A program made the position numbers and the translations under genes. Shown here piece after piece: positions 1 through 53,293 of a stretch of 64,000 nt of DNA (positions are counted from its first letter, which is position 1; the number at the start of each line of letters is the position of its first letter). The notes under the pieces were generated by a model, which was not told the origin of the DNA, did not search any database, and saw only the letters and a list, made by a program, of their open reading frames with translations. This DNA is from Vitrella brassicaformis CCMP3155 (lineage: Eukaryota > Protista > Chromerida), in the NCBI GenBank assembly GCA_001179505.1, contig CDMY01000342.1, positions 1 to 64,000 of the forward strand, read 5' to 3'.

Positions 1-696
1 GTGTCTGTGTGGACTCGCTGCGCTGCACTCACCGCACTCGTTGTGTCGCTCGCAGAAGGCGCGAATCTCACCCAACACCGACAACTGAAACATCACGCCA
101 CACACATCCATCCATCCATCCGTTGTGTGCACCTGTTGGCCGTCGTCGAGCGCATCGACCGGCGCCATCGCAGCGTCGTCGTCTAAGTGACACACACACA
201 TTTATCCAATGACACACGTGGGTGTGGTGTGCGCCAGATCTCTCTCTGTCTCGTCTGTCTGGCACACCTGCGGCCGGCTGCTGCTGTCCGTGGTCATTGG
301 CCTCCTCGTGCTGCCCCTGCTGGTCGTTGTGGTCGCCATGGATGTCGCCATGGTGGCTGGCGTGTGGGTGCGGCTGCTGGATGGCGTGGATGCCGTCGTC
401 ACACGCCGTCTTGACCTTGAGTGTCATCTGGTGGTGCTGTGTGTCGATGCCGCCACAGGCGCACTCGAGCGGAATCTCGTTGTAGTGAGCCGACGGGTTC
501 GATGGGTCGGTGGGGATGAAAGGCCTGAAGTGCTTCGGCTCGTAAGTGGCAGACATCCGCTCGTCGTAGTACCTGCAGTCAGAGCAGCCAACATGCCATG
601 CCAGGGAAACAGACAGACAGTGAGGCGGATGGGCAGTGGCCATTCAGTCTGTCAGCTGCTTACATCATCTTCATGGTCAGATAGCGGTCATCTGCA

Positions 697-734
<38 letters not shown>

Positions 735-1792
735 CAGGGATGATGAGCATCTGTCTCATCTTGTGTGTGTGTGGATGGGCCTGGCCTGCCTGGCAGCGGG
801 CTGAGCTCCTCTAAAGACACACAGGCACACAGACAGACAGACAGACAGACAGACAGAGGGGATGGATGTCGGTGTGTGTGGTGCCTGTGCTGAGTGGCTG
901 CCTTGACTGACTTACGTGTGAGGAAGATGAGGTTCTGGAGCATCGATGTGGTCTGTTTCTTGGCCTCCTCCTTGGACACTCCCCCACTGTGTGCCCCCGT
1001 CGCCTGGTGCCTCACCACACTCGCACTCGCACTCGGCTGTGCCTGTGGGTGGCCGTTGTCGCGCTCCACGTCCACACTCACACCGTTGTCGTACGCAAAC
1101 TGCACAAACAACACACAGAGAGAGATGGGCGTGGTGTGGTTTGGTGAGTGTCTCTCTGTGTGTGTGTCTGTGTGCCTTGAAGTGGTAGGACTCGAGCAGC
1201 GCGTCCGTCAACGAGTCATGGATGCCGAAGATCAACATACTGATTGCACCGCCACATCCATCCATCCATCCACAAGACACAGCACAAGACACACACACGA
1301 GTGCATCCCTCCCTCCCTGCCTGTGTGTGTGGCTGACCGGAGGCACTTCTTGTCGATGGCGTCGAACACACCATCCTCGAGCCACGCGTGCAGCTTCGCC
1401 GCCTCGCTGTGCTCGTCCTTGGGCCGCAAAATCTTCAACGGCAACTCACCTGCACAACACAGACAACACGCAGCCACAACACAAACAGAGAGAGACATGC
1501 ACTTGTGTCGCCTCTCTCACTGATGGTCTTCTCCTCGAAGCAGTCCTCGGGGAAGAGATTGCGAATGTAGGCGATGCTCGAGAGGCTCGTGCGGAGGGCA
1601 TTGCGGATCACTGAAAGAAAGATATTAGACAACACAGGTACAGGCGGGAGTGACCACGTGTGCGTGGCCGGGTGATTGTGTGATCGTGTGGTGGGTGATT
1701 GTGTGCCGACTGCATAGCGATTGCGTGCCGCTGATGGTGGCGGACGTCTGCTGGGTGGCCTGGGCCGGGCGGACCGCCTGAGCCGTTGCCAT
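1..1792 (-). CDS. HOP1: HORMA-domain meiotic axis protein (Hop1/HORMAD-like), multi-exon, 3' end runs off the window
   Basis: Spliced translation MATAQAVRPAQ...QSLCMIRNALRTSLSSIAYIRNLFPEDCFEEK...LKILRPKDEHSEAAKLHAWLEDGVFDAIDKK...TTSMLQNLIFLTRK...YYDERMSATYEPKHF follows HORMA motifs (ITYLRGIFP, VKIL, YYDE..P..YQP). ATG at 1792. Confidence 0.85.
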
Positions 1793-2156
1793 TCTCACTC
1801 ACTCACTCACTCACGTTGTCAATGCGACGCGACAAGAGGAGAAAGCCAATCAATCAATCAATCACTGATCACTGATCACTGAATGAATGAATGAATCGGT
1901 GCTGAGAGAGACACACAGACACTGCTGTCGCTCTTTTTGCAAAATCGATCGAATTAATGCGTTAGAGACATTGACGTAATACAGTACGTATGCGATTCAT
2001 CTAACGAATTCCCGATCGATCGTCCGTTGGTTCACTTTCCTCCGTGTTGTGTCTGTCTGTCTGTCTGTCTGTCGCTGTTCGTCACTTGTCTGTCTGTCAG
2101 TCCATGGACGCTGGCCACTGGGTCTCTGTCTGTCTGTCGGGCACTCCTTCGAAGGC

Positions 2157-4686
2157 TCACGTGTCGAGCTGGCTCTTGGGTGAGAAGAGGTGCAGCAGAA
2201 ACAGGCAGTAGAGGTGGAGGAAAGCGACGTACACATAAAACACCAGCCGGATGGGCGGACTCACGAACAACAGACGCGTGAACGACCTGCACTCACACAC
2301 CCCCATGCGCACCGACGACATCACATGCACAGCATACCACTCACGCGCTGTGGCAGCCACACGCACCTGAGAGGCTGGTCCACCTTGTGGACGAACTTCA
2401 TGACCGTCTCGGCCTCCTCCCCCTCTGGTGCCGCGCCAGCCCCGGCCGTGCCCCGCGCCCGGATGTTCTCACCTGCACCACACACATAGACGTTCACACA
2501 GGTGTGTGGCTGTGAGGGGGTTGTGTGGATGATGCCCACCTCTTTCCATATCTGAGTCGGCGGCCATGTCCTGCCGAAGCTGCTGCAGCTCATACCTCTG
2601 GGTCGTCCGCTCACACACCAGAGTCTGCACACCGCAACACGCCTTGCAATGATGCTCACATCTCCCTCCCACCCTCCCCACGCACCTCTATTCGCTTGTC
2701 CTTCTCGTCGATGCGTCGCTTCAAGTAGTTGATCTCCTCCCTGTACCGCCTCTCCGCCTCCTCCATGACCTGGGAGGGCACCTGGGCCGCGTGTGGTTGG
2801 CGCTGGGCTGTGTCCGCCGTGGTCTGCTCGGAGAGCCGCCTGACGCGCTCCTGGAGCTTGGCGTTGTCATCCTTGAGGTGGGCCACTTCCTGCCGATACA
2901 TGTCGTTCTCCTTTTTGAAAAGGTCGCTGATGTAGCGCGCCTCGGACAGCTCCTGCTCTGTTGTCCTGACAAAACAAACGCACCAGTGCATGCAATGCCC
3001 ACACAGAGAGAGAGATGGACACACTGTGCTCTGTCTGTGTTGGGGTGCGGGTCGGGTGGAGTGGGTGGGTGGCTGACTTGACTTACTTGAGTCGGTCTTG
3101 GAGTGAGAGCAGCTGCCGGTGTGAGCTGTCTTGTTCGCTGACCGACTGTTTCCTGCTGCTGGCCATGTCGTCGAACCGGCGCTGGACGGCTGTCAACTCA
3201 CCCCCAATCTGACACCCACCCACCATGCAGGAAGCACGCAGGCAGACAGAAAGAAATCGGTGCAATGCGGTGCGGTTCTCAGCTTCTCAGCCAGACCACA
3301 CCGACCTCTCCGTATGCCTGCTGGAGGTCGTCGAATTGCGCCTGCAGCTCAGCGCATCTGTCGAGGGCGGCCTGTTTCTCCTGCTCTTGTTTGCTGAGGT
3401 CGGCGCGGAGGCTGGCCTCCGTCTCGACCACGTCGGACTGCAGCTGGTCGAAGCTGGAGAGATGCTGCCGCAGATGCTCCAGCTCCACCCGATGCCGCTC
3501 GCGGTAACGCTCCATCTCGGCGCTGTGTTCGCTCTCACTCTGACCACCGCCACCACAACACAATACACAACACACAACACACAACACACATGGCGGGGAT
3601 GCGTGTGCGTGTGCGTGGGGTGTGCGGCACGAACCTGTTCGTATGCCTGCTGCTTCTCCTGGATAAGCCCTTGGAGGCTGTCTACCTCTCGTCGTGACAT
3701 CAACAGGTCCGCCTGCAAAGACTTGACCTGACACCAGACCAGAGATCAGACACACAATCCGGCAACCAACCAAGCCCGTCGAGCATACTGCATGTGCACG
3801 GACGTCCGTACCTGGTTGTTGGCCTGGTTGAGCTCCTTCCTGTACTGGTCGATCTGTCCGTCCTTGCCCATTAGCAGCGAGTGCAGCTCCTGCTCGATCT
3901 CTGTCTTGACCTGCTCGGTCTCCGCCTCGTGCACCGCCTGCAGTCCATCCATCCATCCATCCAAGTGGAAGGCCACATCTGTTCTCCCCCCATCTGACCT
4001 GTGTCTCCTTCTTGAACTCGAGCATCTCCTTCTCGGCCTGCTTGCGCTGCGCTCGACACGACTCCTCTGCCGCCTCGGCACGCTGAACCGCCGACGCGAG
4101 TTGCTGACGGACGGCGTCCATCTCACCCCTGCACACACACACACACACACACAACACACGTGCGGATGGTTGGCTCATGCGTGTGTGGGTCCGTGTGGTT
4201 GGCTTGGGGCCTTTGTCGTACGTGAGCTGCTGGTTGCCATTCTTCTCTTGCTGCCAGAGGCGTCGCAACTCGGCGTTGTCCTCTGAGGTCGTGTTGAGCT
4301 CACGGTAGGCCTCCTGCACGACACACGACACACACAGACACATGCCAAGATAATGATGGCATTGCAATGTTATGGGAATACCTGGAGCTTGGCCTCCATG
4401 GCACTCTGGTTGTCGCCCATTTGGTCCCTCTGCCGCAATGCCTCCTCAGATTGGTGTGTGAGCTCCTCGATGCGCCTCTGGTGGGCGTCGAGGCCCTCCT
4501 GCAGCGACATGGCCTTCGCCTGAGCAGCGGCCAGCTTGGCCGAGCCAGCGGCCACCTCTCCGTCGAGCTGTGACTGGATTTCCTGCACGCGAGAGGCATG
4601 CTCGGCGGTGAGAGAATCCTGGGCCGCCTGCCAACGAGATAAAGACACAGAGAAACATCGAGCGGTGTGTTTGGTGTGTTTGGAGT

Positions 4687-4718
<32 letters not shown>

Positions 4719-7541
4719 CCAACCAACCGCCCATCCACCGACCTGCATGGCCTGCATGTCCGACGCAGACTTGGCCTCCAGGTCGGCAAGCTGCTTGGCC
4801 AGCGTCTCGTTGAGCGCCTCCTTGTCGTGTTTCTCCGCCTGCAGCCGCTCTATCTGCTGCTGGTAGCTGCAGTTCTCCCGCCTGAGGCCCTCCAGCAGCC
4901 GCCACAGCTGTCGCACGTCCGCCCCCTCCTTGCCAGGCGACGATGGCGCATCGGCGGGTGCGCGAGGGTGGTCTTCGGATGTCTGTGTCTCCATAGCAAC
5001 CTGACACACATACACACACTCACAAGTGGACTGACGGATGGTCAATGAGAGGAGTGAGGCCTCACCCTGGCGGATGGCGAGGTCAGCACGGCGGCGTCCG
5101 TGCCCACAAAAGCAGATGTAGCAGTTGGTGGAGGGAGGGAGGTCTCGGCCGTGGTCGACGCGCTCGGCTGGGCCGGCTCATCCGGACGGATCAATGCATC
5201 GGGTGAATGCTCCTGCTGCTCCTGCTGCTCCTGCTGCTGCTGATGCTGCTGATGCTGCTTCTGCTGATGCTGCTGCTCGCGCGGCTCCTCGAGTGCTGGT
5301 AATGGCTCGTCTGGCACACCCTCTGCCAATGGGGTGAGAGATGCAGCCTGGTGCTGCTGCTGCTGGAGCTGGGGCTCGGTCGACTCCACTGCATCTATTG
5401 GCAGCTGAACATTGGCCGACTCGACAGCTCTCGGTGACAGCCCGCCGCTCTCACCCACGTCGATCAGCGGTGCCTCATCGTGGCTGGGCAGCAGCTGCTC
5501 CGCACCCTCATCGCCGGCTTGCGGTGTTGCGAGGTCATCAATCGACAGGTCCTCCACCCCCCATCCTTCAGAAGCCGCCTGCAATGCCCGCGGCGAGTCC
5601 TCCATGGCACTCCTCGCACTGAGCTCTCGCTCTTGTGTGGTCGTCTCGGGGGCTGGTGGGGATAGGCCATCGGTGTCGCGAGAGACCACCTCAGGCGACA
5701 GCGGGGGCGAGGGCAAGGGCGGCTGGCCGTGGCCTTCAGGTGCCGACTCGCTGGACAGCGGCAATGGCACGTCCATATCCACGTCAGCCATCATCTCTGT
5801 GGGAGGCTGGAGCTTCACGACCGTCCGTGTGATGTGGCTGCCGTCTGCACATGAAGACGAGCTGTTCATGTCCTCCCCTGCGTCAGCGGGTGGCGTCGAG
5901 TCCAGCGCAGCAGAGGCCGGTGCAGAGTGGGCCGCCGCGTTGAGGGCGTTGAGGCTGACAGGCGTGGGCGACACACACGGGGATGCGATCCTGTGGGCCT
6001 CGTCGCTCTCGTTGCTGTTGGTGGCTTCGATCTCCTCACTGTTCTCCGTCGTCACGGAGGGGGAGGGCAGCGCTGCAGCCGGCTCGTGTGGTGGGGAGGC
6101 GTGTGGCGGCTGGCGAGAGCGGTCGGTGTCCTGGCTGCCCAGCGGGCCGCCCGCCTCGCTCGACACTTCCCGGGAAGACTCGGTGAAGACCTGCGATGAT
6201 GGGAGGGGCGGGGAGGAGGTGCCGAAACGGGGAGAGGCGGCTGATGGACCAGCAGGCATCACCTAAGTGAATTGATGAAGGCACACTGTCGATCGAGATG
6301 GTGTACCATCAGTGTGTCTATCGGTTCTTTCCCACCTCACTCACCACGGCAGCAGGCTGCCTCTGCGGTCCGTCGCTGGCCGGCAGCGCCCTGTCGCCCT
6401 CACCCAGCCCGTTCTCCACACCTCCTCCCCCCTCCACAGCCACAGGAGCAGCCACAATCTCGCCACCGCCACCGCCACCACCATCGGCACCACTGCCCGC
6501 ATCGATCGCCTCAGTCGAGTGCCGCATCACCGGGCTGGTCGTCGCCCTCTCCCGCTTCTCACACGGCGACGAGCGGTTGGATCCCGTTTTGCCCACGAGG
6601 AGGAAACTCCCGGACATGGCCCCTCCCTCAGACGGGAGCAGAGAGAACGCCGATGACGGATGCGACGATGAAGACGAGACATTCGAGTGGGACGGCGACA
6701 GCCTCTGTGCCGCAGCGACGGTGGGGGCGGGCAGTGAGGGTGGTGCCGACTCCACTGGTCGGACTGATGGCTCTGGGGCGGCAGATGCGGCCAGTGGTGG
6801 TTTGCCGCTCTCAACAGCGGAAACAGGGCGGTCCACACGAACAGGCTGGTCCGGGCGAGACGCTTGTGGCGGCAGCGGCAGGCGAGGCCGCTTCGGTGCC
6901 TCCTTGCCCGTGTCCGCCAACCCAAACGACTCAAAGAAATCCACCTGCTGCTTCATCCCAGCACCAGGTTGTTGAGTGCCGCCATCTTTGCCGGGGTGGG
7001 TGGATGGGGCCGTGGGTGATGGGGAGGTCTTGGCGCCCTTCTTTGTCATGGGGGTGGCCGATGCCGACTGCGGCGAGTCAGTGGTCATGAGCTCGGAGTG
7101 CAGGTGCGCGACGGCTCCCTTGAAGAAGCTCACGGCTGACGTCATGCCCTCGCCGGCACGGGATGAGGCACCCGCAAACAGGTCACTCACGCCTAACAGA
7201 CAGACAGGCAGGCAGGCAGACAGAGAGATCGACACTCGCAGGCAGGCAGCACTGAGATGGCTACTGGTAGTACCGGCTTTGAGTGCCGCTGCAGATCGTG
7301 CTCCACTGGTCGGCTGCTGCTGCTGCTGCTGAGTAGTGCCCCAGCCCGGCGCAACACCGCTGCGCGGCGAATCCTCCGGGACGTCGTCATCGTCTGCAAC
7401 ACACAGACCAGCGGGTGGGCAGATACACAAGTGCCGAGACTTCCTGGATGTCAGCACACCTTTGTGACGTGTTTCCCTATCCAGCAAGGAGCCGTCGTCC
7501 ACTTTGTCCAACAACGTCTCGATCGACTTCAGGAAGTGCAT
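2157..7541 (-). CDS. Golgin-84-like tail-anchored coiled-coil protein, many exons
   Basis: N-terminus MHFLKSIETLLDKVD resembles the golgin-84 tethering motif; large low-complexity exons at about 6318-7190 and 5060-6262; heptad-rich exons 2300-5000; C-terminal RLLFVSPPIRLVFYVYVAFLHLYCLFLLHLF matches the golgin-84 transmembrane anchor. Confidence 0.7.
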
Positions 7542-7791
7542 ACCGCACCGTGCTGTATGGAGTCAGATTCAACAACACTGACGGCAGAGATCCTTCCCTC
7601 CCTGGCCCTAGGGTTTGGGTTGCAAGGTATGCCAACTTGCCCCCGCAGAACAGGAAGGAGAAGTGCGGTGACTGGAAAAGCATGCCATTTGCTGTGTAGC
7701 TTGCTATTGGGACGCTACACAGCAACCTCGTGTTGCTGCTGGCTCCAAGCAGAGGCTCTGCGATATTACCGCCATCCGTGTGTGACAGACG

Positions 7792-9127
7792 ATGAACGCC
7801 AACCGCCACACGCAGGGCAACCGCTCGCTGACCAGCCGGGCGCAGTCCATCGCGCGCATCCTGCGGGAGCAGCGCGAGATGGCGTCGCACCCGAGCAGCC
7901 ACTGGTACGCGGCGCCCATCGACCTGGACGACCCCTACGAGTGGCACTTCACACTCAAGGGGCCGGATGACACCGACTTCCAGGGCGGCATGTACCACGG
8001 CAGGATACTGCTGCCGCAGGTGCGTGTAACAAGACAGCAGAGTGCGTCGTTGGTTCACTCACTGTTTCTGGTCTGCTTCTTGTCGTGTCTGTCTTGTGCT
8101 GTGGTGATGTCGCGTCGTCAGGACTACCCGTTTTCGCCTCCGTCGCTGTATCTGCTGACGCCCAATGGCCGGTTTGAGGTGGGCAAGAAGATCTGCCTCT
8201 CGGCCTCGTCGTACCACCCGGTCGGTAGACGAACACACACACACACACACGCACACACACACACACACATCGATGGGCGGCCGCCGGATAAATGGATGGG
8301 TGGATGTGCACAGACAGATCCACACGAGAGCAGACGGATGCATTCCTGTGTGTATGTTGTGTGGTGTGTGTTTAGGAGTTGTGGCAGCCGGCCTGGGGCA
8401 TCCGTACCATTCTCGAGGCGCTGAGGGCCTTCTTCCCCACACCGGGGGATGGCGCCATCCGGTCACTGGACTGGGACCCCCACATCAGGCGAAAAATCGC
8501 CAAGGAATCGGGTGAGCGGAGGATAGACGCACACGGCCCTAGAGCTGCGTGTGGATGTTTGTGTGTGGATATGATGTGTGTGCAGGTGGGTGGGTTTGCC
8601 CGGTGTGCAAGAAGAGCAACCGCGAGATCATTGAGAGCAATTGCCCCGCACACGACACCGACACCGAGCGGCCGCCCGCACCGTGCCCCATCAAATTCTC
8701 TCACGAGCAGCAGCCAAACAACAAGAGCAACACCACAGCGGAAATGGCAAATGCCACCACCACCAGCACATTAACCGAGCCAGCAGCCACGGAAGCAGCA
8801 GCGGCACCAGGCCCCTCCCCTGCACTCTCCGCCTCCCCGGCACCACCCACTGGGCCGTCGAGTGGGGGCCACCGGGTGCGTCGGCGGCCGCCGTCGTTGC
8901 ACCGGGGCCCTGTGGTGTGGCAGCTGATCAAGAGCTTCCGCGACAGTGTGCCGCGTACGCGGCTGGACCTGCTGGCGTGCGGGCTGGACTGCCTGATGCT
9001 GTTTCTGCTGGGGTGTGTGGTAGTGCTGCTGATAGAGCTCATGTGGAGCCCACCACTCGCACCCAAGATGGGCAGTGGCCAGAGTGGCGGGGCGGGGGCG
9101 GGGCTGGGCGCAATAGACGAGCTGTGA
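7792..9127 (+). CDS. UBC6: ER-anchored ubiquitin-conjugating enzyme, Ubc6/UBE2J type
   Basis: Exons give YEWHFTLKGPDDTDFQGGMYHGRILLPQ-DYPFSPPSLYLLTPNGRFEVGKKICLSASSYHP-ELWQPAWGIRTIL, then CPVC and a C-terminal hydrophobic anchor LACGLDCLMLFLLGCVVVLLIELM; TGA at 9125-9127. Confidence 0.92.
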
Positions 9128-39186: not shown

Positions 39187-41587
39187 TCATTTTTTCTTCT
39201 TCTTCTCGTCCTGTTTTGGCTTGCTGCTTGCTTGTTTCTTCTTCTCGTCCTGTTTCTTCTTCTCGTCCTCTTTCTTCTTATCGTCCTCTTTCTTCTTCGC
39301 ATCCTGGTTTGGTTTGTTGGGATTCGTCTTGGTCGCTGGGGATTTCTTTGTGGTCGATGGGGGCTTCTTTAGCTTCTCCTTGCTGCTCTTGTCCTCCTTT
39401 GGCTTCTCCTTGCTGCTCTTGTCCCCCTTTGGCTTCTCCTTGCTGCTCTTGTCCTCCTTTGGCTTCTCCTTGCTGCTCTTGTCGTCCTTTGGCTGCTTCT
39501 CCTTGCTGCTCTTGTCGTCCTTTGGCTGCTTCTCCTTGCTGCTCTTGTCCTCCTTTGGCTGCTTCTCCTTGCTGCTCTTGTCCTCCTTTGGCTGCTTCTC
39601 CTTGCTGCTCTTGTCGTCCTTTGGCTGCTTCTCCTTGCTGCTCTTGTCCTCCTTTGGCGTCTCCTTATCCTTGTCCTGCTTTGCCTTCTCTTGTTGACGT
39701 TCTTGTTTAGCCTCAGCAGCCTTAGCGTCTCTTTCTGCCTTCTTCGTTTCTGATAGACATGACGGAATCGAGATATCTATAGATAGACAGACAGGCATAT
39801 GGTACCTTTTTCCTCTTGTTTCAGCCGCTGCTCCTCCTCTCGTTTGTCTCGTTTTTCTTTTTCACGGGCGTCTCTATCCTCCTTTTTCTCTTCTTGGCGT
39901 TGTTGTTTAGCCTCAGCAGCCGCGTGTTCCTTGACGTCTTTTTCTGCCTTCTTCCTTTCTGATAGACATGACGGAATCGAGATATCTATAGATAGACAGA
40001 CAGGCATATGGTACCTATTTCCTCTTGTTTCAGCCGCTGCTCCTCCTCTCGTTTGTCTCGTTTTTCTTTTTCACGAGCGTCTCTTTCCTCCTTTTTCTCT
40101 TCTTGGCGTTGTTGTTTAGCATCAGCAGCCGCCTGTTCCTGAACCGCTCTTTCTGCCTTCTTCCTTTCTGATAGACATGACGGAATCGAGATATTTATGG
40201 ATAGACCGACAGGCATATGGTACCTTTTTCCTCTTGTTTCAGCCGCTGCTCCTCGTGCTTGCTATGCTGTTCGTCGGCGTCTTCTGGCTGCTTCTCAGTG
40301 ACATCTGTTGTTGGCTGCTCCTCGGGAGGGGTCTCTTCTGCTTCAGGCTTGGGGGTCTCATCCGCTTCATACTGCTCTTCCGCTTTAGGCTGCTGCTCCT
40401 CGGTGGATGACTTAGGGACCTCTTCTGCTTCAGGCTGCTCCTCGTGCTTGCTATGCTGTTCGTCGGCGTCTTCTGGCTGCTTCTCAGTGACATCTGTTGT
40501 TGGCTGCTCCTTGGGAGGGGTCTCTTCTGCTTCAGGCTTGAGGGTCTCATCCGCTTCATACTGCTCCTCCGCTTTAGGCTGCTGCTCCTCGGTGGATGAC
40601 TTAGAGACCTCTCCTGCTTCAGGCTGCTCTTCGTGGGATGGCTCGGAAATATTTCTCGCTTCAGACTGCTGCTGTTCGGGAGGTGGCTCTGGGGTCTCTT
40701 CTGCTGCGGGTTGCTGTTGTGTGGAGGGCGCTTCGTTGTCAGGCTCTGGCTCGAGTTTGCCGCTGCTGACATCCCCTTGAATCCCTTCGAGTTCTCCCGC
40801 GACCTTCTGGCCTTTGTCGGACGGCGTCTCGGAGCAGTCCAAATCACTGCCTTTCAGCACGATGGGCTCCTCGCCAAGATTAAGCCGCTGTTTCAGGCGT
40901 TGTATCAAAGCTTTTCGAGCCCGCTGAAATTTGAGCACCTTCAGGTATTTGTGGAGTTCTGGGGGGATGCATTTCTTGATGAACGAAGGGACGGGCCAGA
41001 GAGATTCCTCGGTCAGCTCGAAAGTCTCCGGCACTGGCGCTTCAACCTCTTCTATCTCTGTCGCCATCCCGGTCGTCTCAGCAGGTTTCCCGGTCTCTTC
41101 TGGGTCTGCATGCACACACGTCCACCCAGCGAACCCACGCGTAGAGGCGAGGAGAGGCAGTTCACTTGAGTGGCCGCCATCTCACCGTCGTAGTCCATCA
41201 TTTTGCCATGGATAAGAGAGATTGCTGTCTCTCTTCGACCCACTGCAAAACAAAGATGATTGCATGTTACAGCGTTACAGCGCACCTTCGTCGGATGTGC
41301 CGTTGCTGTGTACGCTCACATGATGGCAGAAGCGTGATGCCCTCCCTTCTTCTCCTCCCCCTCATGAAGCGTCGCACGAGATGAGGGCTGCTCTCGTGGA
41401 CTTGAAGGCACATGGATGCCGTGATGCGGCTGTGGGCAGCAGTCCTGTTGTTGCTGCTGGTGGTTCTGTTGCTGCTGCTGATGATCGTCCCGGCGTAGCG
41501 CCTCCGCAGTGCAATGATGGCTTCTGAGGCCATAGTCAAAGCAACGGCAAGAAGGACAGTCACTCCGAGCGGAAGGACCGCGGGCAT
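39187..41587 (-). CDS. Repetitive E/K-rich protein, possibly secreted (5' exon structure unresolved)
   Basis: Open exon 40224-41110 with a 60-aa duplication; 209-bp exon+intron repeats; terminal exon of 24/27-bp KE(KQ/K)PK(E/D/G)DKSS repeats; hydrophobic MPAVLPLGVTVLLAVALTMASEA at 41587 may be its signal peptide. Confidence 0.6.
39365..39670 (-). repeat. Coding minisatellite, 24/27-bp units
   Basis: About ten units of CTTCTCCTTGCTGCTCTTGTC(C/G)TCCTTTGG with or without an extra CTG. Confidence 0.9.
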
Positions 41588-46800: not shown

Positions 46801-49230
46801 NNNNNNNNNNNNNNNNNNNNNNNNNNNNNNNNNNNNNNNNNNNNNNNNNNNNNNNNNNNNNNNNNNNNNNNNNNNNNNNNNNNNNNNNNNNNNNNNNNNN
46901 NNNNNNNNNNNNNNNNNNNNNNNNNNNNNNNNNNNNNNNNNNNNNNNNNNNNNNNNNNNNNNNNNNNNNNNNNGAGACGACTACGTGTGTGCGTGCAATT
47001 GAGGGGGGCTGCGTGTGCATGCCATGCCATGGATGTGCCTTCCAGGCAAACAGACAACCAGATTGACCGACAGACGGACAGAGGGACAGAACTTTTTCTG
47101 GATTGCTGTCTGCACACGATACATACATGCTCTCACCGTATCTATATACCGTTGGGTATGTAATTTGCTGGCTGGTTGGAGGGGTGGATGCAGTGTGTGT
47201 GCGCACCGCATCGCATCGCATCGACTGGTGTTTTTTGTAATTCAGACACCGGTCGGCCGATGGATGGATCCGTCCTGGCAAGTGAGCTGAGCGTGGCGTA
47301 ATTGCATTCACTGTGTCTGTGTTGTTGCGTGTTGTGTGCATGTCGCTCTGTATGTATATATAATATCTATACACATTCATGTCTTGTCTGTTTGTTTGTT
47401 GAGGGAGGCAGATCAGTCAGTCAGTCGAGGAGTCCCGCCTGTCATGTCCTGTCTGCCCGCTTGTTTGGCTGGAGTGTCGGCTGGCTGGCTGGCTGGTTGG
47501 TTGGCTGGTTTTGCGTTGTTCCTTCCTTCAAGTTGTCATATTTATATCTATCATACGTACATATCCATCAATGGATCGATTCATGTCGTGCGTGTCTGAC
47601 ATGTCTCATCTAGCCAGCCGGCAAACCAAAGCCCTTCTTGCTTCCTGCCTTCCCTCCCTCCCTCCCGTGGCACATGCACCGCTCCGCTGACAAACAGCCA
47701 GGCTGTGTGTGTGAATGCACTGCATGGAACGTCCCTGCCTGCATCATGCATCGTGCCATGCATGGCATGACCGATGTTCGTGTACGTATGCGCGACCGTC
47801 ACGCTACCTGCTGTGTCTCCGTGGTGACTGCCTGTACATACCACACAGACAAATGGCCGGTGATGCATGGGATGGACGGTGTTACCTACATAGATTTGTA
47901 ATCCCTCAACAAAAAGGTGTGCGTGTCTGCGCGTGCGAATGGCATAGGTGTAGTGCTGGTGGTGGTTGGTTGCAGTAGAAGTGGTTGTTGTGCTCATTGA
48001 GGCAAGCTGGCGTGGGTCCAACTGCTGGAACTGGCGAAGAAACGCATCGAGCTGCTGCCTCTGTCGCTGATGCTCCTCCCACTTCTCCTCGTAGCGTGAC
48101 AAAGGCTGTCCACTGGGCGGGGGGTCGAAAAGGCACCACGGACGGCCGGATGGTCGGGGTTGCGGCTGTGTTCTGTTGTGTGTTGCCGTGACGTCCTCAC
48201 CGGGCCGAATGCAGCTTCGACGTCGCCACGACGAGCCTTGCCTCTCGTCCCAGACGTGGTGCCGTATCGATCTGTGTACTGAAGCGTCATTATTTTGCAT
48301 CCTTTGTCGGTCACGCATGAGTCTCATCATCCATTCATTCGACGTACTGTACGTGTCTTTCCACACACACCAACCAAATCGACACACTCTGTACGTAGCT
48401 AGCTAGGCGCACACACATATATACACACAAGACGAAAAGGCCAAGCACTCAAAGCGATGCTTGTGCCATGAACAGACAGACAGGCAGGCAGACAGAGACA
48501 GACACAGAGGCAGACACAGAGGCAGAGAGGGAGAGAGGGAGAGAGGCACACACACACGGCTAGAGAGGCACACACACACGACTAACTCATGCACGGCAGG
48601 CATGACATACAGCTTCTCGAACAGCACATACACATGATGTACAGAGCCGACAGACGTATGGCAAAGAAGCACGCACACGCACACACGAGTGAGTGAGTGA
48701 GTGCTCCCACGTACGGCTCACTCTTGACTCACACGACCGACCATGCATCGCTCGCGTACACAAACAACGCCTCGCTTAGCGCCCACACCACCCCACACCC
48801 ACGTCGCCACGCACGCACGCACGCCCGCAAGCATCGACTAATCGAGTGTCCTCGATCGATCTGGCTCCTGTCCTGTCTGCCTCACGGCTGACGGACACCG
48901 TTGACAAAAGGCGGGCGATGGAATGTGTGTGTGTGTGTGTGTGTGCTCAGTGAGTGCCGCACACACAGTCCACACACTCAATAATCTACACACTAGGGTA
49001 AGTACTTACACGAACAATTACTCACCCACCTACACATGCACACATCTGACTGACGGACTGACTGACTGCCTGGCTGGCTGGCTGGCTGAGTGATTCATAT
49101 CAACACGGCACTCACTCACGGCCAGCGCAGCATGCAGCGCACGCACGCACGACATGCAGACAGACAGATCTGCCCAGCACAGCCCAGCCCTGTCTGTCCC
49201 CGGCCCCTCTGTCTGTCCCTCCTTCGTCAA

Positions 49231-50046
49231 TCAACAGGGACCGCCGCAAAGCTTGTCGGCATGTTTGTCAAGCTTGTCGGCACCCTTGTCAAGAAAACCC
49301 GACAAATTGTAGGCCCCAGAATTCCAGGCAACATTGGCCATGTCCCGTTTGACCTTTCCAACGAACCGTTTGGCCTTTCCAACGGCCCGTTTGGCCTTTC
49401 CAAAGAGAAAGTCAATAATAAGTCTCCTCCGATCGGCGGCGGCGGCGTCGGGTCCAGATGACGCGCTGATACGCTCCTTGCGGAGTCTGTCGACGGTCAT
49501 GCGGCTGCGGTCGTCGGTCCGGATGGCCGTGAGGGCCGACTCAAGGTCCACAGGCGCCCCGCCTATCAGCTCGCGGAACTCAGAAGCTGTCTTGACCTCT
49601 GGCTCAACGACTGCAGTCAGTCGTTAACACACAACAGACATCCACTCACAGGTTGTGTGTGCGTCAGGAGGAACAGGCAGCACACATACCTGGTGCCTCA
49701 GCTGTCGACGACTGCTCCGTCTTGTCGTCTGCTGTTTCCACCGCCGTACGCACAACAGTCTCAGGCAGGACACCTGCACACACATAATATACACACACAG
49801 GAAGTATGTATTGCCAGCCTGAGTGCGAGAGTGCAGACGTGTGGATGACTGACTGAGTGAGTGAGTGGGTGTGTGCGTACCTTCAGTTGTGATTTCGTTG
49901 GCACCATCAGCTGTCCCGCCTCGCAATCGCCTCGCCAGCACAGAGGGTGCGGCACCAGCAGCAGCAGCAACAGCAGGCGGCTGTGGATCAGCCGACGCCA
50001 GAGTGATGCCGACAACACACAGCAGCACGCTAAGGACCTTCATCAT
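49231..50046 (-). CDS. Secreted prepropeptide A (209 aa), candidate cationic amphipathic peptide precursor
   Basis: Exons 50046-49881, 49773-49690 and 49610-49231 (GT-AG, total 630 nt). Signal MMKVLSVLLCVVGITLASA, acidic propiece, DRRR, then LIIDFLFGKAKRAVGKAKRFVGKVKRDMANVAWNSGAYNLSGFLDKGADKLDKHADKLCGGPC*. Confidence 0.85.
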
Positions 50047-51889
50047 CCTTGTCAGGAGCAGATGGATGGATATACGCGAGCAAGCAGACCAGCAGCAGAC
50101 CGAGAGGCAGGCACGAGTGAGTGACAGACAACAAAGAGCGGGCTGGGCAGCACTCAGTGATGCTTAAGCTGTCTGCGATAAGTGGTCGGCAGAGAGATGC
50201 TTGCAGTCGAGTAGGGATGAGGAGGATGGATGGAGGGCAGCTCAGGCTGGCAACAGTGGGTCGTTGCAAAAGACACAAGGCCACCAAGACAGTCGCACTG
50301 CAGAGAGAGAAGGGAGGGAGAGAAAAGAGAGGAGTCGCACCTCTCGCTCGCTGCCAATCAGCCTGCGATGTACCTCATCGTCCAACATGGCCGGCCGACT
50401 GTGAGTCACCGAGGGCAGGGCTGGTCTTCGAGCGGTGCGACCCGTCTGCACGCCCAACGAACCAACAGGCACCACGCCAACAGAGAACGAACAAATGCGC
50501 TGCATTCGTCATTGCATAGATCTTGTGTGTCCTCTCACCGGATCCCCTCCCCGACGACTTTCTTCCGCTTAGCTCGCAGACTTAAGACATTCCGTGAAAC
50601 CGCTCTCTCACTGGAAGGCACGACAAAAACACTCCACATCTACGATGGCTTCTGCAGGTACTTATGTACTGGTTGTGTTGCGGTGCATGGGGCTGCTTTC
50701 GTCAGGGGCGGCGTCCTTTTTTGACCCTGTGCCGCTTGCTTCGGCGACTCCCCCTCCCTCTCTCTGATCCTGGCCAAGCAGGCCTCAGTGGCCGTCGAGG
50801 AGCTCAGACGTCTGTCTGCGCGGCAGCGGGCGCTCTCACTGCTTGTCGCTTAGCCACTTGTTGCCGGCCATTTGCAGTGGACATGGCATCAGATCTGTTC
50901 TAGGGCAGTGTCTGCATCAATTGTCGTGTGGTTCTGCAGACGGATATCTATTGGCATGAATGGACCAATCAATTGACAACACATCGATTTATCGATCTAA
51001 GCGTCATTTATTTTGCATCCTTTGTCGGTCACGCGTGAGTCTCATCATCCATTCATTCGACGTACTGTACGTGTCTTTCCACACACACCAACCAAATCGA
51101 CACACTATGTACGTAGCTAGCTAGGCGCACAGACACGTATACACACAAGACGAAAAGGCCAAGCACTCAAAGCGATGCTTGTGCCACAGACAGACAGACA
51201 GACAGAGAGACAGACACAGAGGCAGAGAGGGAGAGAGGGAGAGAGGCACGACTCACTCGTGCACGGCAGGCATGACATACAGCTTCTCGGACAGCACATA
51301 CACATGATGTACAGACCCGACAGACGTATGGCAAAGAAGCACGCACACGCACACACGAGTGAGTGAGTGAGTGCTCCCACGTACGGCTCACTCATGACTC
51401 ACACGACCCCATGCATCGCTAGCGTACACAAACAACGGCTCGCTTAGCGCCCACACCACCCCACACCCACGTCGCCACGCACGCCCGCCCGCCAGCATCG
51501 ACTAATCGAGTGTTCTCGATCGATCTGGCTCCTGTCCTGTCTGCCTCACGGCTGGCGGACACCGCTGACAAAAGGCGGGCGATGGAATGTGTGTGTGTGT
51601 GTGCTCAGTGAGTGCCGCACACACAGTCCACACACTCAATAATCTACACACTAAGGTAAGTACTTACACAAACAATTACTCACTCACTTACACATGCACA
51701 CATCTGACTGCCTGGCTGGCTGGCTGGCTGGCTGGCTGAGTGATTCATATCAACACGGCACTCACTCACGGCCAGCGCAGCATGCAGCGCACGCACGACA
51801 TGCAGACAGACAGACAGACAGACAGATCTGCCCAGCCCAGCCCAGCCCAGCCCTGTCTGTCCCCGGCCCCTCTGTTTGTCCCTCCTTTG

Positions 51890-52570
51890 TCAATAACAGG
51901 GACCGCCGCAAAGCTTGCCGGCATGACTGTGAAGCTTGTGGCCCTTGTTCCACATATGATTCCCGACGTTGTTGAGCCCAGCAGCGTACGCAACATTGGC
52001 AATGCCCTTTTTGACACTTCCAACGAACTGTTTGACCTTTCCAAGGAATTCACCAAGAAGTCTCCTCCGATCGGCGGCGGCGGCGTCGGGTCCAGATGAC
52101 GCGCTGATAGTCTTAACCTCTGGCTCAACGACTGCAGTCAGTCGTTAACACACAACAGACATCCACTCACAGGTTGTGCGTGCGTCAGGAGGAACAGGCA
52201 GCACACATACCTGGTGCCTCAGCTGTCGACGACTGCTCCGTCTTGTCGTCTGCTGTTTCCACCGCCGTACGCACAACAGCCTCAGGCAGGACACCTGCAC
52301 ACACATAATATACACACACAGGAAGTATTGCCAGCCCGAGTCCGAGAGTGCAGACGTGTGGATGACTGACTGACTGACTGAGTGAATGGGTGTGTGCGTA
52401 CCTTCAGTTGTGATTTCGTTGGGATCATCAGCTGTCCCGCCTCGCAATCGCCTCGCCAGCACAGAGGGTGGTGCGGCACCAGCAGCAGCAGCAACAGCAG
52501 GCGGCTGTGGATCAGCCGACGCCAGAGTGATGCCGAAAACACACAGCAGCACGCTAAGGACCTTCATCAT
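51890..52570 (-). CDS. Secreted prepropeptide B (164 aa), paralogue of A
   Basis: Exons 52570-52402, 52294-52211 and 52131-51890 (total 495 nt). Same signal peptide and nearly the same propiece, DRRR, then LLGEFLGKVKQFVGSVKKGIANVAYAAGLNNVGNHMWNKGHKLHSHAGKLCGGPCY*. Confidence 0.85.
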
Positions 52571-53293
52571 CCTTGTCAGGGGCAGATGGATGGATGGATG
52601 TACGCGAGCAAGCAGACCACCAGCAGACCGAGAGGCAGGCACGAGTGAGTGACAGACGACAAAGAGCGGGCTGGGCAGCACTCAGTGATGCTAAGCTGTC
52701 TGCTGAGTGGTCGGCAGAGAGATGCTCGCAGTCGAGTGGGGATGAGGAGGATGGATGGAGGGCAGCTCAGGCTGGCAACAGTGGGTGGATGCAAAAGACA
52801 CAAGGCCACCAAGACAGTCGCACTGCAGAGAGAGAAGGGAGGGAGAGAAAAGAGAGGAGTCACACCTCTCGCTCGCTGCCAATCAGCCTGCGATGTACCT
52901 CATCGTCCAACATGGCCGGCCGACTGTGAGTCACTGAGGGCAGGGGGCGAGAGTGGCTTATGGAAGATGCAGCAGCTCATCTTCATAGAAGCCACGAAAC
53001 CGGGTCCCTGCTGAGCACGAGGGAGATAGTGCAGTGTTTGCCAGTGGATAAGGGACCGCGCTGCTATTGTAGCGGGGATCTGGGCATCAACTGCGCGAGA
53101 GATCGCTTGGCGCGCGCTCAAATGATGGAGTTAGTGCGCAAAGCTCCGCGAAGCAGTACTGCCCGCCGTTCTGAGTTTGTCGTGTAGCTTTCCGGAGAGT
53201 TTTAGACGCTCTTCGTGTCATTGGAAATCCCCTGTTGATTCGTTTCTCGGCTCCGGCGCCCCTCGAGTGCTCTCGCGGTTCCCTCTGCGTTGG

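Follow-up and report, generated by a model that had tools for sequence, protein, structure and literature searches.

A Vitrella-restricted family of small prepropeptides with a conserved carrier and hypervariable cationic tails

A 64,000-nucleotide stretch of Vitrella brassicaformis CCMP3155 DNA (assembly GCA_001179505.1, contig CDMY01000342.1, positions 1 to 64,000; hereafter the window) carries, side by side on its minus strand, two genes for small precursors that end in cationic tails. A first-pass annotation, made from the letters alone, had taken this pair, here called A and B, for antimicrobial-peptide precursors built like those of frog skin, namely: a signal peptide, an acidic propiece, a tribasic cleavage site and a cationic helix. 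The question that the locus raises is what such a layout stands for in an alga, and how far the likeness to frog skin reaches. The evidence firmly supports that A and B belong to a Vitrella-restricted multigene family of small prepropeptides, which is expressed and is predicted to be targeted to the endoplasmic reticulum (ER). That the family yields processed, membrane-active peptides for defence or competition, convergent with the frog-skin precursors, is the most economical reading of this layout, and one whose chances we put at about even. Taken as a whole, the sequence family is new while the system is of a known kind; its two RRL/RxL sites are an unusual combination that touches on the question of the apicomplexan export motif.

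Rebuilding the spliced frames from the sequence gives three coding exons for both genes, with 630 nucleotides (nt) and 209 amino acids (aa) for A, and 495 nt and 164 aa for B. All four coding introns are of the GT..AG type and both reading frames are open. The translations match CEM03481.1 (P0001, from A) and CEM03482.1 (P0003, from B) at 100 %, both deposited for V. brassicaformis CCMP3155. Thus, the guess of the first-pass annotation that the DNA came from a chromerid alga was right, and its two intact three-exon genes are confirmed for the coding exons by introns, open frames and deposited matches; beyond these, each gene has a fourth, non-coding exon at its 5' end. A and B are therefore already annotated, with records in both GenBank and UniProt. 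The GenBank entries for A, B and a paralogue, C, are named ‘unnamed protein product’, and UniRef gives A/B-type proteins the automatic, unreviewed name ‘RxLR effector protein’, which is probably misleading whatever the function. No published work on this gene family was found in the full-text literature, and the chromerid genome paper is silent on it. The two genes sit within a direct tandem duplication with a spacing of 2.52-2.72 kb (Table 1). There is no third copy in the window, where tblastn matches A and B only.

The first-pass annotation had left further paralogues to be searched for, and the search brings the family to at least nine genes in Vitrella, which fall into two subfamilies, and adds one homologue from the environment. 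With the exon-3 translation of A as the query, three Vitrella proteins are retrieved from assembly GCA_001179505.1, namely: A, B and C (CEM03351.1). A profile of these three was then scored against 1.84 billion protein cluster representatives and gave six matches. Four are relatives of the same layout (Vitrella B, D and P0008, and the environmental P0005); one is P0006, a Vitrella secreted protein that shares only a propiece module; and one is a 1569-aa protein that matches profile positions 3-39 (E 6e-8). Further members came from a word-indexed profile search. The environmental homologue aside, no relatives beyond the Vitrella lineage were recognised among the 1.84 billion clusters. Subfamily 1 comprises A, B, C (204 aa), D (129 aa) and the environmental homologue M1 (188 aa, ENA assembly ERZ893782), which ends in LCGWKC. 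C and D form a tandem pair close to the end of contig CDMY01000338.1; D, whose exon 2 has been lost, ends in CGYNQYCSY. Subfamily 2 (P0008/P0010, P0011, P0012 and P0013) lies on four other contigs. Its genes keep the three coding exons, with intron positions conserved between the subfamilies, and encode a signal peptide of similar style, ARRLRGG, a more acidic propiece with a net charge of -17 to -22 and the second site ERRL. The tails that follow are rich in Lys, Trp and Tyr, their charges lie between +8 and +13, and GGGGY or GRGY repeats occur in some of them.

Searches for known families were negative throughout. Pfam (hmmscan) has no match, either with exon 1 and exon 3 or with the full proteins; NCBIfam returns only a meaningless 16-bit match to L23; a sequence profile search of the PDB gives 0 matches at E up to 1; and Foldseek, run with the A model against the PDB, finds generic helical hairpins only (sulerythrin, ferritin, ROP) with E above 0.5. 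Homology to a LEA-like or other structural family, which the first-pass annotation had named as grounds for abandoning its proposal, was found in none of these four.

The end of CDMY01000338.1 was also inspected (positions 1-8000). D lies at 2076-2539 and C at 4609-5413 with an N-run gap past C, and a solo copy of the 5' untranslated region (UTR) plus the first 12 coding bases lies at 6651-7264. The flanks of the units in this second array run off the contig end, so the family may exceed what the assembly shows. Close relatives are also present in environmental data, namely: ERZ893782, Logan ERR3274946 and run X9 (marine sediment metagenome). Vitrella-like organisms with cargo variants of their own can thus be sampled from metagenomes. 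Automatic gene callers on environmental assemblies read through intron 1, which truncates the protein (P0005, P0009).

Common to the family is a layout of signal peptide, ARRLRGG, acidic propiece, a second RR(x)L site and a hypervariable cationic tail, along which conservation is distributed very unevenly. At the DNA level, A to D share 89-100 % identity over the 5' UTR, exons 1 and 2, the two introns, the propiece and the 3' flank, whereas a block of ~165 nt between the RR(x)L and CGGPC codons is only 65-78 % identical and has sharp borders. By the Nei-Gojobori method, nonsynonymous (dN) and synonymous (dS) divergence in this mature block are 0.32-0.52 and 0.13-0.41, respectively, with dN/dS between 1.2 and 2.5 in all six pairs; dS in the prepro region is 0.02-0.08. 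M1 is 84-91 % identical to the subfamily-1 proteins in the prepro part and 31-36 % identical in the mature part, and the genes of subfamily 2 likewise have a conserved prepro part and a variable tail. The frame stays open in five subfamily-1 sequences through a block that has diverged by 22-35 % in DNA and by ~65-70 % in protein. Chance open reading frames (ORFs) were rejected as an explanation, since the frame is kept across the diverged blocks in these five sequences and the exon junctions are used in RNA contigs.

Signal peptides were called by a heuristic that combines Kyte-Doolittle hydropathy with small residues at -3 and -1. The predicted signal peptide of A has a hydrophobic core with an 11-residue mean of ~3.0 and small residues at both positions, and its cleavage is predicted between ASA and DPQ. 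Plastid bipartite targeting, in which the Ala/Arg-rich stretch that follows would serve as a transit peptide, was set aside without a formal test because this stretch has only ~20 residues, starts with Asp (Asp-Asp in subfamily 2) and is followed by a strongly acidic region.

The charges first reported for the two precursors hold on recounting. Downstream of DRRR, peptide A has 13 Lys/Arg and 6 Asp in its 63 residues (net +7, with +8 in residues 1-26), and peptide B has 7 Lys, 1 Glu and 4 His in its 56 residues (net +6); these counts, as well as the hydrophobic positions listed for B, are exact, and the propieces of both are indeed acidic (-9 and -10). Across the family, propieces range from -6 to -22 and mature parts from +4 to +13, with a Pearson r of -0.76 (n=9, the members being phylogenetically non-independent). 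Within A to D, the charge sum from the first RRL to the C-terminus stays between -1 and +1 despite propieces that vary from 34 to 102 aa in length. The length differences arise where exon 2 or a 39-residue module has been lost, while the cargo is kept; shrinkage by a whole exon or module in this way fits a dispensable carrier. By alignment, A, C and the environmental homologue have the module, and B and D lack it. A homologous segment is repeated three times in P0006 (CEM06919.1; profile positions 92-143, E 1.4e-12).

The core of the module reads PVDLESALTAIR...DRLRKERI in A, C and M1. P0006 itself has 332 aa, ends in GGRRLRGD and belongs to no Pfam family, and an MMETSP transcript of it exists.

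The two putative processing sites are the fixed points of the layout. ARRLRGG, at site 1, lies ~20 residues past the predicted signal cleavage, is invariant in all family sequences read and forms the longest invariant block between the subfamilies. Site 2 reads DRRRL in A, B and D, ERRGL in C, DRRSL in M1 and ERRL in subfamily 2, so that a core of RR, zero or one residue and Leu is invariant in 10/10 sequences amid hypervariable surroundings. The tribasic DRRR site described at first is thus present in A, B and D but, given the variants in C, M1 and subfamily 2, is not a conserved feature; the family motif is RR(x)L, or RxL. A plain dibasic convertase is the less economical explanation, since the Leu never varies and since peptide A has three KR pairs in its interior that such an enzyme would be expected to cut; kexin-type dibasic cleavage was judged less likely as the conserved signal for these reasons.

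RRLxx after an ER signal peptide is the TEXEL pattern, and site 1 has it as RRLRG in 10/10 sequences; site 2 is RRL in 8/10 and RGL or RSL in 2/10. At the fifth position, where PEXEL has E/Q/D, site 1 has G, and site 2 has I, G, F, G, K, P and L in the seven distinct sequences checked. ASP5 cleaves RRLxx with constrained P1-P3 and a dispensable P2', at both N- and C-terminal substrate ends (PMC4764566). According to PMC10900883 and PMC10790765, the motif in Plasmodium and Toxoplasma is primarily a maturation site and is carried by non-exported proteins as well. Vitrella aspartyl proteases are included in PMC8540915, the text of which assigns none of them to clade D or otherwise. The family resembles substrates of Toxoplasma ASP5 (TEXEL) and plasmepsin V (PEXEL) in having an ER signal peptide followed ~20 residues on by RRL. 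Vitrella belongs to the sister lineage of Apicomplexa. It differs, however, in being free-living with no known host cell, and its cargo is a cationic segment of 29-63 aa rather than a dense-granule protein; two of the ten second sites are RGL or RSL, the P2' E/Q/D of PEXEL is not present, and both the cleavage and the protease are putative.

The tails themselves have the periodicity of amphipathic helices. Over the first 30 residues of the tails of A to D, the hydrophobic moment peaks at 95-105 degrees, and the best 18-residue window exceeds shuffled sequences with p 0.004-0.043 (peptide A: maximum moment 0.70, p 0.005; peptide B: p 0.043), which bears out the helical spacing first read from the sequence. 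For A, AlphaFold2 predicts a helix at residues 138-180, a turn and a second helix at 184-205, with a predicted local distance difference test (pLDDT) of 73-88; B has the same helix-turn-helix topology at low confidence. The propiece has a pLDDT below 50 and is predicted to be disordered. Two C-terminal Cys are found in all five subfamily-1 sequences, and the loop residues between them vary (CGGPC, CGWKC, CGYNQYC); a Cys pair that is kept while its loop changes suggests a small disulfide loop, which recalls the Rana box of frog peptides without being identical to it. In an ESM-Atlas feature search, the nearest named clusters of both peptides are frog antimicrobial peptides (AMPs; PF08023), dermaseptin, cecropin and bombinin.

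Transcription and splicing are observed for the paralogues. Contigs from RNA runs X1 and X2 run from exon 3 through exon 2 into exon 1, with every junction precisely where it was predicted and an intron depth of zero; the joints are 49610/52211 (ends CT..AC) and 52292/49879. At 49486 these spliced contigs have T>G, the change by which paralogue C has Ser in place of Arg. Another joint, 52131/49881, fits either D, which is without exon 2, or an exon-skipped B. A 92-nt contig from X1 is the 3' UTR of A (49118-49209) with no mismatch and is the sole unambiguous A-specific RNA contig. MMETSP transcripts and an intron-less contig of 1094 nt contain spliced ORFs of full length for C and for members of subfamily 2; this cDNA-type contig (L007) aligns to 50520-50374 and 50302-49879. 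In addition, joint 50297/50341 in X1 reveals a 43-nt intron in the 5' UTR. Beyond the source genome, the mature block of A was found only in the marine sediment metagenome, with 59 % of its words.

Splicing of the 5' UTR leaves an upstream ORF of ~66 codons that starts with the ATG at 50387. What had looked like a conserved promoter upstream of A and B is mostly 5' UTR.

Table 1. Features of genes A and B in the window (coordinates of B in brackets where both are given).
Feature	Position	Strand	Basis
Gene A coding region, CEM03481.1	49231..50046; exons 50046-49881, 49773-49690, 49610-49231	minus	spliced reconstruction, 100 % protein match
Gene B coding region, CEM03482.1	51890..52570; exons 52570-52402, 52294-52211, 52131-51890	minus	spliced reconstruction, identical protein
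Predicted signal peptide, A residues 1-19, ending ASA before DPQ	49990..50046 (B: 52514-52570)	minus	hydropathy heuristic
Site 1, RRLRGG, A residues 39-44, within ARRLRGG	49915..49932 (B: 52436-52453)	minus	invariant in alignments
Acidic propiece of A, net -9, both introns within span	49435..49914 (B: 52073-52435, net -10)	minus	charge count
39-residue propiece module, A residues 92-130	49471..49587	minus	alignment and profile match
Site 2, DRRR, next Leu codon completing RRL	49423..49434 (B: 52061-52072)	minus	sequence
Cationic peptide A, 63 aa, net +7, ends CGGPC	49234..49422	minus	residue count, AlphaFold helix-turn-helix
Cationic peptide B, 56 aa, net +6, 4 His, ends CGGPCY	51893..52060	minus	residue count
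5' UTR of A, ~430 nt, with 43-nt GT..AG intron 50298-50340	50047..50520	minus	RNA joint, intron-less contig alignment
5' UTR of B	52571 to at least 52945; intron 52823-52865 by register	minus	register with A
Tandem duplication unit 1	48290..50420 (unit 2: 51008-52945)		direct-repeat families D1-D4, D6

A mechanism can be proposed on this basis. The signal peptide would take the precursor into the ER, and the short N-terminal segment up to the invariant RRL of ARRLRGG would be removed. A cut at the second RxL-type site at the propiece end (RRL, RGL or RSL, always after RR) would then free the C-terminal cationic peptide, with cleavage presumably at or beside the conserved Leu. The likely enzyme would be an aspartyl protease like ASP5 or plasmepsin V, or else a subtilase like the site-1 protease, a classical dibasic convertase being less likely. 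Until release, the acidic propiece may neutralise the cationic part. Once freed, the peptide of A to D would form a helical hairpin of amphipathic character, with a small disulfide loop closing its C-terminal end. It could target the anionic membranes of bacteria or of other organisms that compete with Vitrella in the reef biofilm, and diversifying selection may keep its sequence diverse.

Frog-skin AMP precursors (brevinin, esculentin, nigrocin, dermaseptin) are the closest parallel. Like the Vitrella family, they consist of a signal peptide, an acidic propiece, a basic site and a cationic amphipathic peptide, and they are arranged as tandem multigene families. In ranid AMP genes this tripartite layout goes with a conserved prepro part, positive selection on a hypervariable mature part, and propiece and mature charges that are negatively related (PMC7106915), as here. 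An anionic propiece likewise balances the cationic mature peptide in defensins, according to work cited in PMC7106915. In the Rana box, two Cys lie 4-5 residues apart with the second at the C-terminus (PMC6280737), whereas the putative Vitrella disulfide loop is C-x3-C in four of the five subfamily-1 sequences (D has five residues between) as opposed to the frog C-x4-5-C. The differences extend further: the Vitrella family has no match to PF03032, PF08023 or PF12121; its site is RR(x)L instead of KR; it has an extra invariant RRL right after the signal peptide; its peptides are longer, at 45-63 aa; and it belongs to a unicellular alveolate alga. With no Pfam homology to the frog families, any likeness is convergent. 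Gly/Tyr-rich tails of the YGGYG type are found in some invertebrate AMPs, which subfamily 2 resembles in this, but the folds and sequences of defensins and of the Gly/Tyr-rich nematode and arthropod AMPs are unrelated to those of the Vitrella family. Thus, the architecture, the hypervariable mature block, the charge balance, the Cys pair and the multigene family all sustain the frog-type layout of the first-pass annotation, while homology is lacking, the site is RxL rather than tribasic, and the more strongly conserved ARRLRGG, which the dermaseptin model leaves unexplained, points to processing of the TEXEL/RXL kind. The evidence does not support placing the family among frog AMPs, oomycete RxLR effectors, PEXEL substrates or diatom biosilica proteins; the likeness to each is one of mechanism and layout.

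Several points weigh against processed, membrane-active peptides as the product of A and B. The ESM-Atlas scores are 0.50-0.62, a range rated as a lead only, peptides of 56-63 aa are long for linear AMPs, and the second helix of A is not cationic. The tails of subfamily 2, with their Lys/Trp/Tyr composition and Gly-Tyr repeats, suit a role in a wall or an adhesive equally well. In one-sided Fisher tests, dN>dS is of borderline significance (p 0.045-0.33). dS in the mature block is also raised several-fold, so that gene conversion in the flanks, together with the retention of old, distinct cargos, would explain part of the contrast; selection acts on the cargo either way, gene conversion or not. 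No statement on a chromerid orthologue of ASP5 or plasmepsin V was found in the literature. As for expression, 49486 T>G means that the spliced contigs carrying it document paralogue C, and the spliced contigs seen derive from C and from D or B. No RNA contig at >=95 % covers the mature-coding region of A (49231-49436) or distal B (51883-52003), and the mature words of A were found in no listed RNA run, in a search of runs of any kind that was not aimed at RNA. The splicing pattern of the first-pass gene models is thus confirmed by junctions used in paralogue contigs, while RNA evidence specific to A and B is partial.

Other products can be imagined for the same layout. In one such proposal, which we consider rather unlikely, the released Lys-rich peptides are structural or adhesive polycations that are built into a thick cell or sporangium wall or an adhesive matrix, where they would bind polyanionic polysaccharides or form tyrosine cross-links, with a precursor logic like that of diatom silaffins and RXL-domain proteins. 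Diatom RXL-domain proteins (silaffins, cingulins, silicanin-1) do have a signal peptide followed by a short stretch of ~30 aa ending in RRL or RXL, which is proteolytically removed by an unknown protease (PMC5525289), and in the Vitrella family ~20-23 residues lead from the predicted signal cleavage to RRL. The proposal is most plausible for subfamily 2, the tails of which carry GGGGY and GRGY repeats and up to +13 in 29 aa. Silaffin precursors, too, begin with an acidic part and continue with a basic one. A and B, however, are without Tyr/Gly repeats or Ser/Lys clusters, contain 1-2 Tyr only and show helical amphipathic periodicity; they share neither silica biology nor sequence homology with the diatom proteins, and Vitrella is not known to silicify. 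Furthermore, dN/dS above 1 and hypervariability confined to the cargo would be unusual for wall components. We give still less credence to a tail that is never released, in which case the charge-neutral protein would act intact, e.g. as a disordered matrix or storage protein of secretory granules. The precursor is nearly charge-neutral overall and most of the chain is predicted to be disordered, both of which would suit such a protein. On the other hand, an unchanging RR(x)L marks, in 10/10 sequences, the very point where the conserved part gives way to the hypervariable one, and the propiece varies from 34 to 102 aa by exon or module loss while the cargo is never lost.

The RRLR/RRL motif could instead be a host-targeting signal of translocated or contact-dependent effectors, with the basic tail acting in or on a coral or protist cell, as the UniRef label ‘RxLR effector protein’ would imply. 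As in oomycete RxLR effectors, A and B have a signal peptide, an RxLR motif (here RRLR) within the first 45 residues and an acidic region next; RRLR stands at residues 39-42 in A and 40-43 in B, ~20 past the signal cleavage and inside the ~60 residues within which RxLR is expected. RRLxx is also TEXEL (see above), and strongly cationic Lys/Trp peptides can cross membranes. But no EER, and hence no dEER motif, occurs in any family sequence read, where the region is merely acidic; Pfam finds no WY-type or other effector domain; the cargo has only 29-63 aa and is predicted to form a simple helical hairpin; and the lineage is a different one. Vitrella is free-living and at most loosely associated with corals (PMC4501334, PMC5864212), and the motif in Plasmodium and Toxoplasma, according to the two sources cited above, serves primarily for maturation, in non-exported proteins too. 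We therefore hold effectors to be very unlikely. Equally small is the probability that we assign to secreted signalling peptides, i.e. pheromones, mating-type factors or quorum-like cues. A multigene family with a conserved prepro part, a variable mature part and a putative small disulfide loop is compatible with signalling, and in the ciliate Euplotes, too, the prepro part of pheromone precursors is conserved while the mature ligands diverge. Amphipathic helices and net charges between +4 and +13, balanced by acidic propieces, however, point to binders of membranes or polyanions rather than to receptor ligands, and these peptides have one disulfide at most and no predicted compact fold.

If the peptides are indeed released and membrane-active, they would be new, sequence-unrelated helical-hairpin and Lys/Trp-rich peptides from a lineage with none described. 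They would be a clear instance of convergence on the host-defence precursors of frogs and invertebrates, with a conserved prepro part, a hypervariable cargo and balanced charges, and they would provide natural, abundant and easily assayed candidate substrates for an RxL-specific secretory protease. Since these candidates come from a free-living relative of Plasmodium and Toxoplasma, the origin of PEXEL/TEXEL would become experimentally approachable. The most far-reaching version, which we regard as doubtful, is that a free-living chromerid uses a parasite-type RRL/RxL maturation signal at both ends of an acidic carrier and thereby releases rapidly diversifying, cationic, membrane-active peptides. 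Were this version true, the apicomplexan-chromerid lineage would have its first gene-encoded antimicrobial-peptide system, and the finding would suggest that the parasite export motif originated as a prepropeptide processing site for secreted defence peptides.

Two further repeats were observed in the window. At 51036-51761, in the 3' flank of the duplication unit, contig depth reaches ~1300 in runs X3 and X6, in which the genes are barely covered; this segment probably contains a dispersed or microsatellite-rich repeat common to other organisms or loci. At 40245-40622, two tandem 189-bp units that are 97 % identical lie inside a long minus-strand ORF (40195-41115) and encode a 63-residue repeat, which is acidic and rich in Glu, Pro and Gln.

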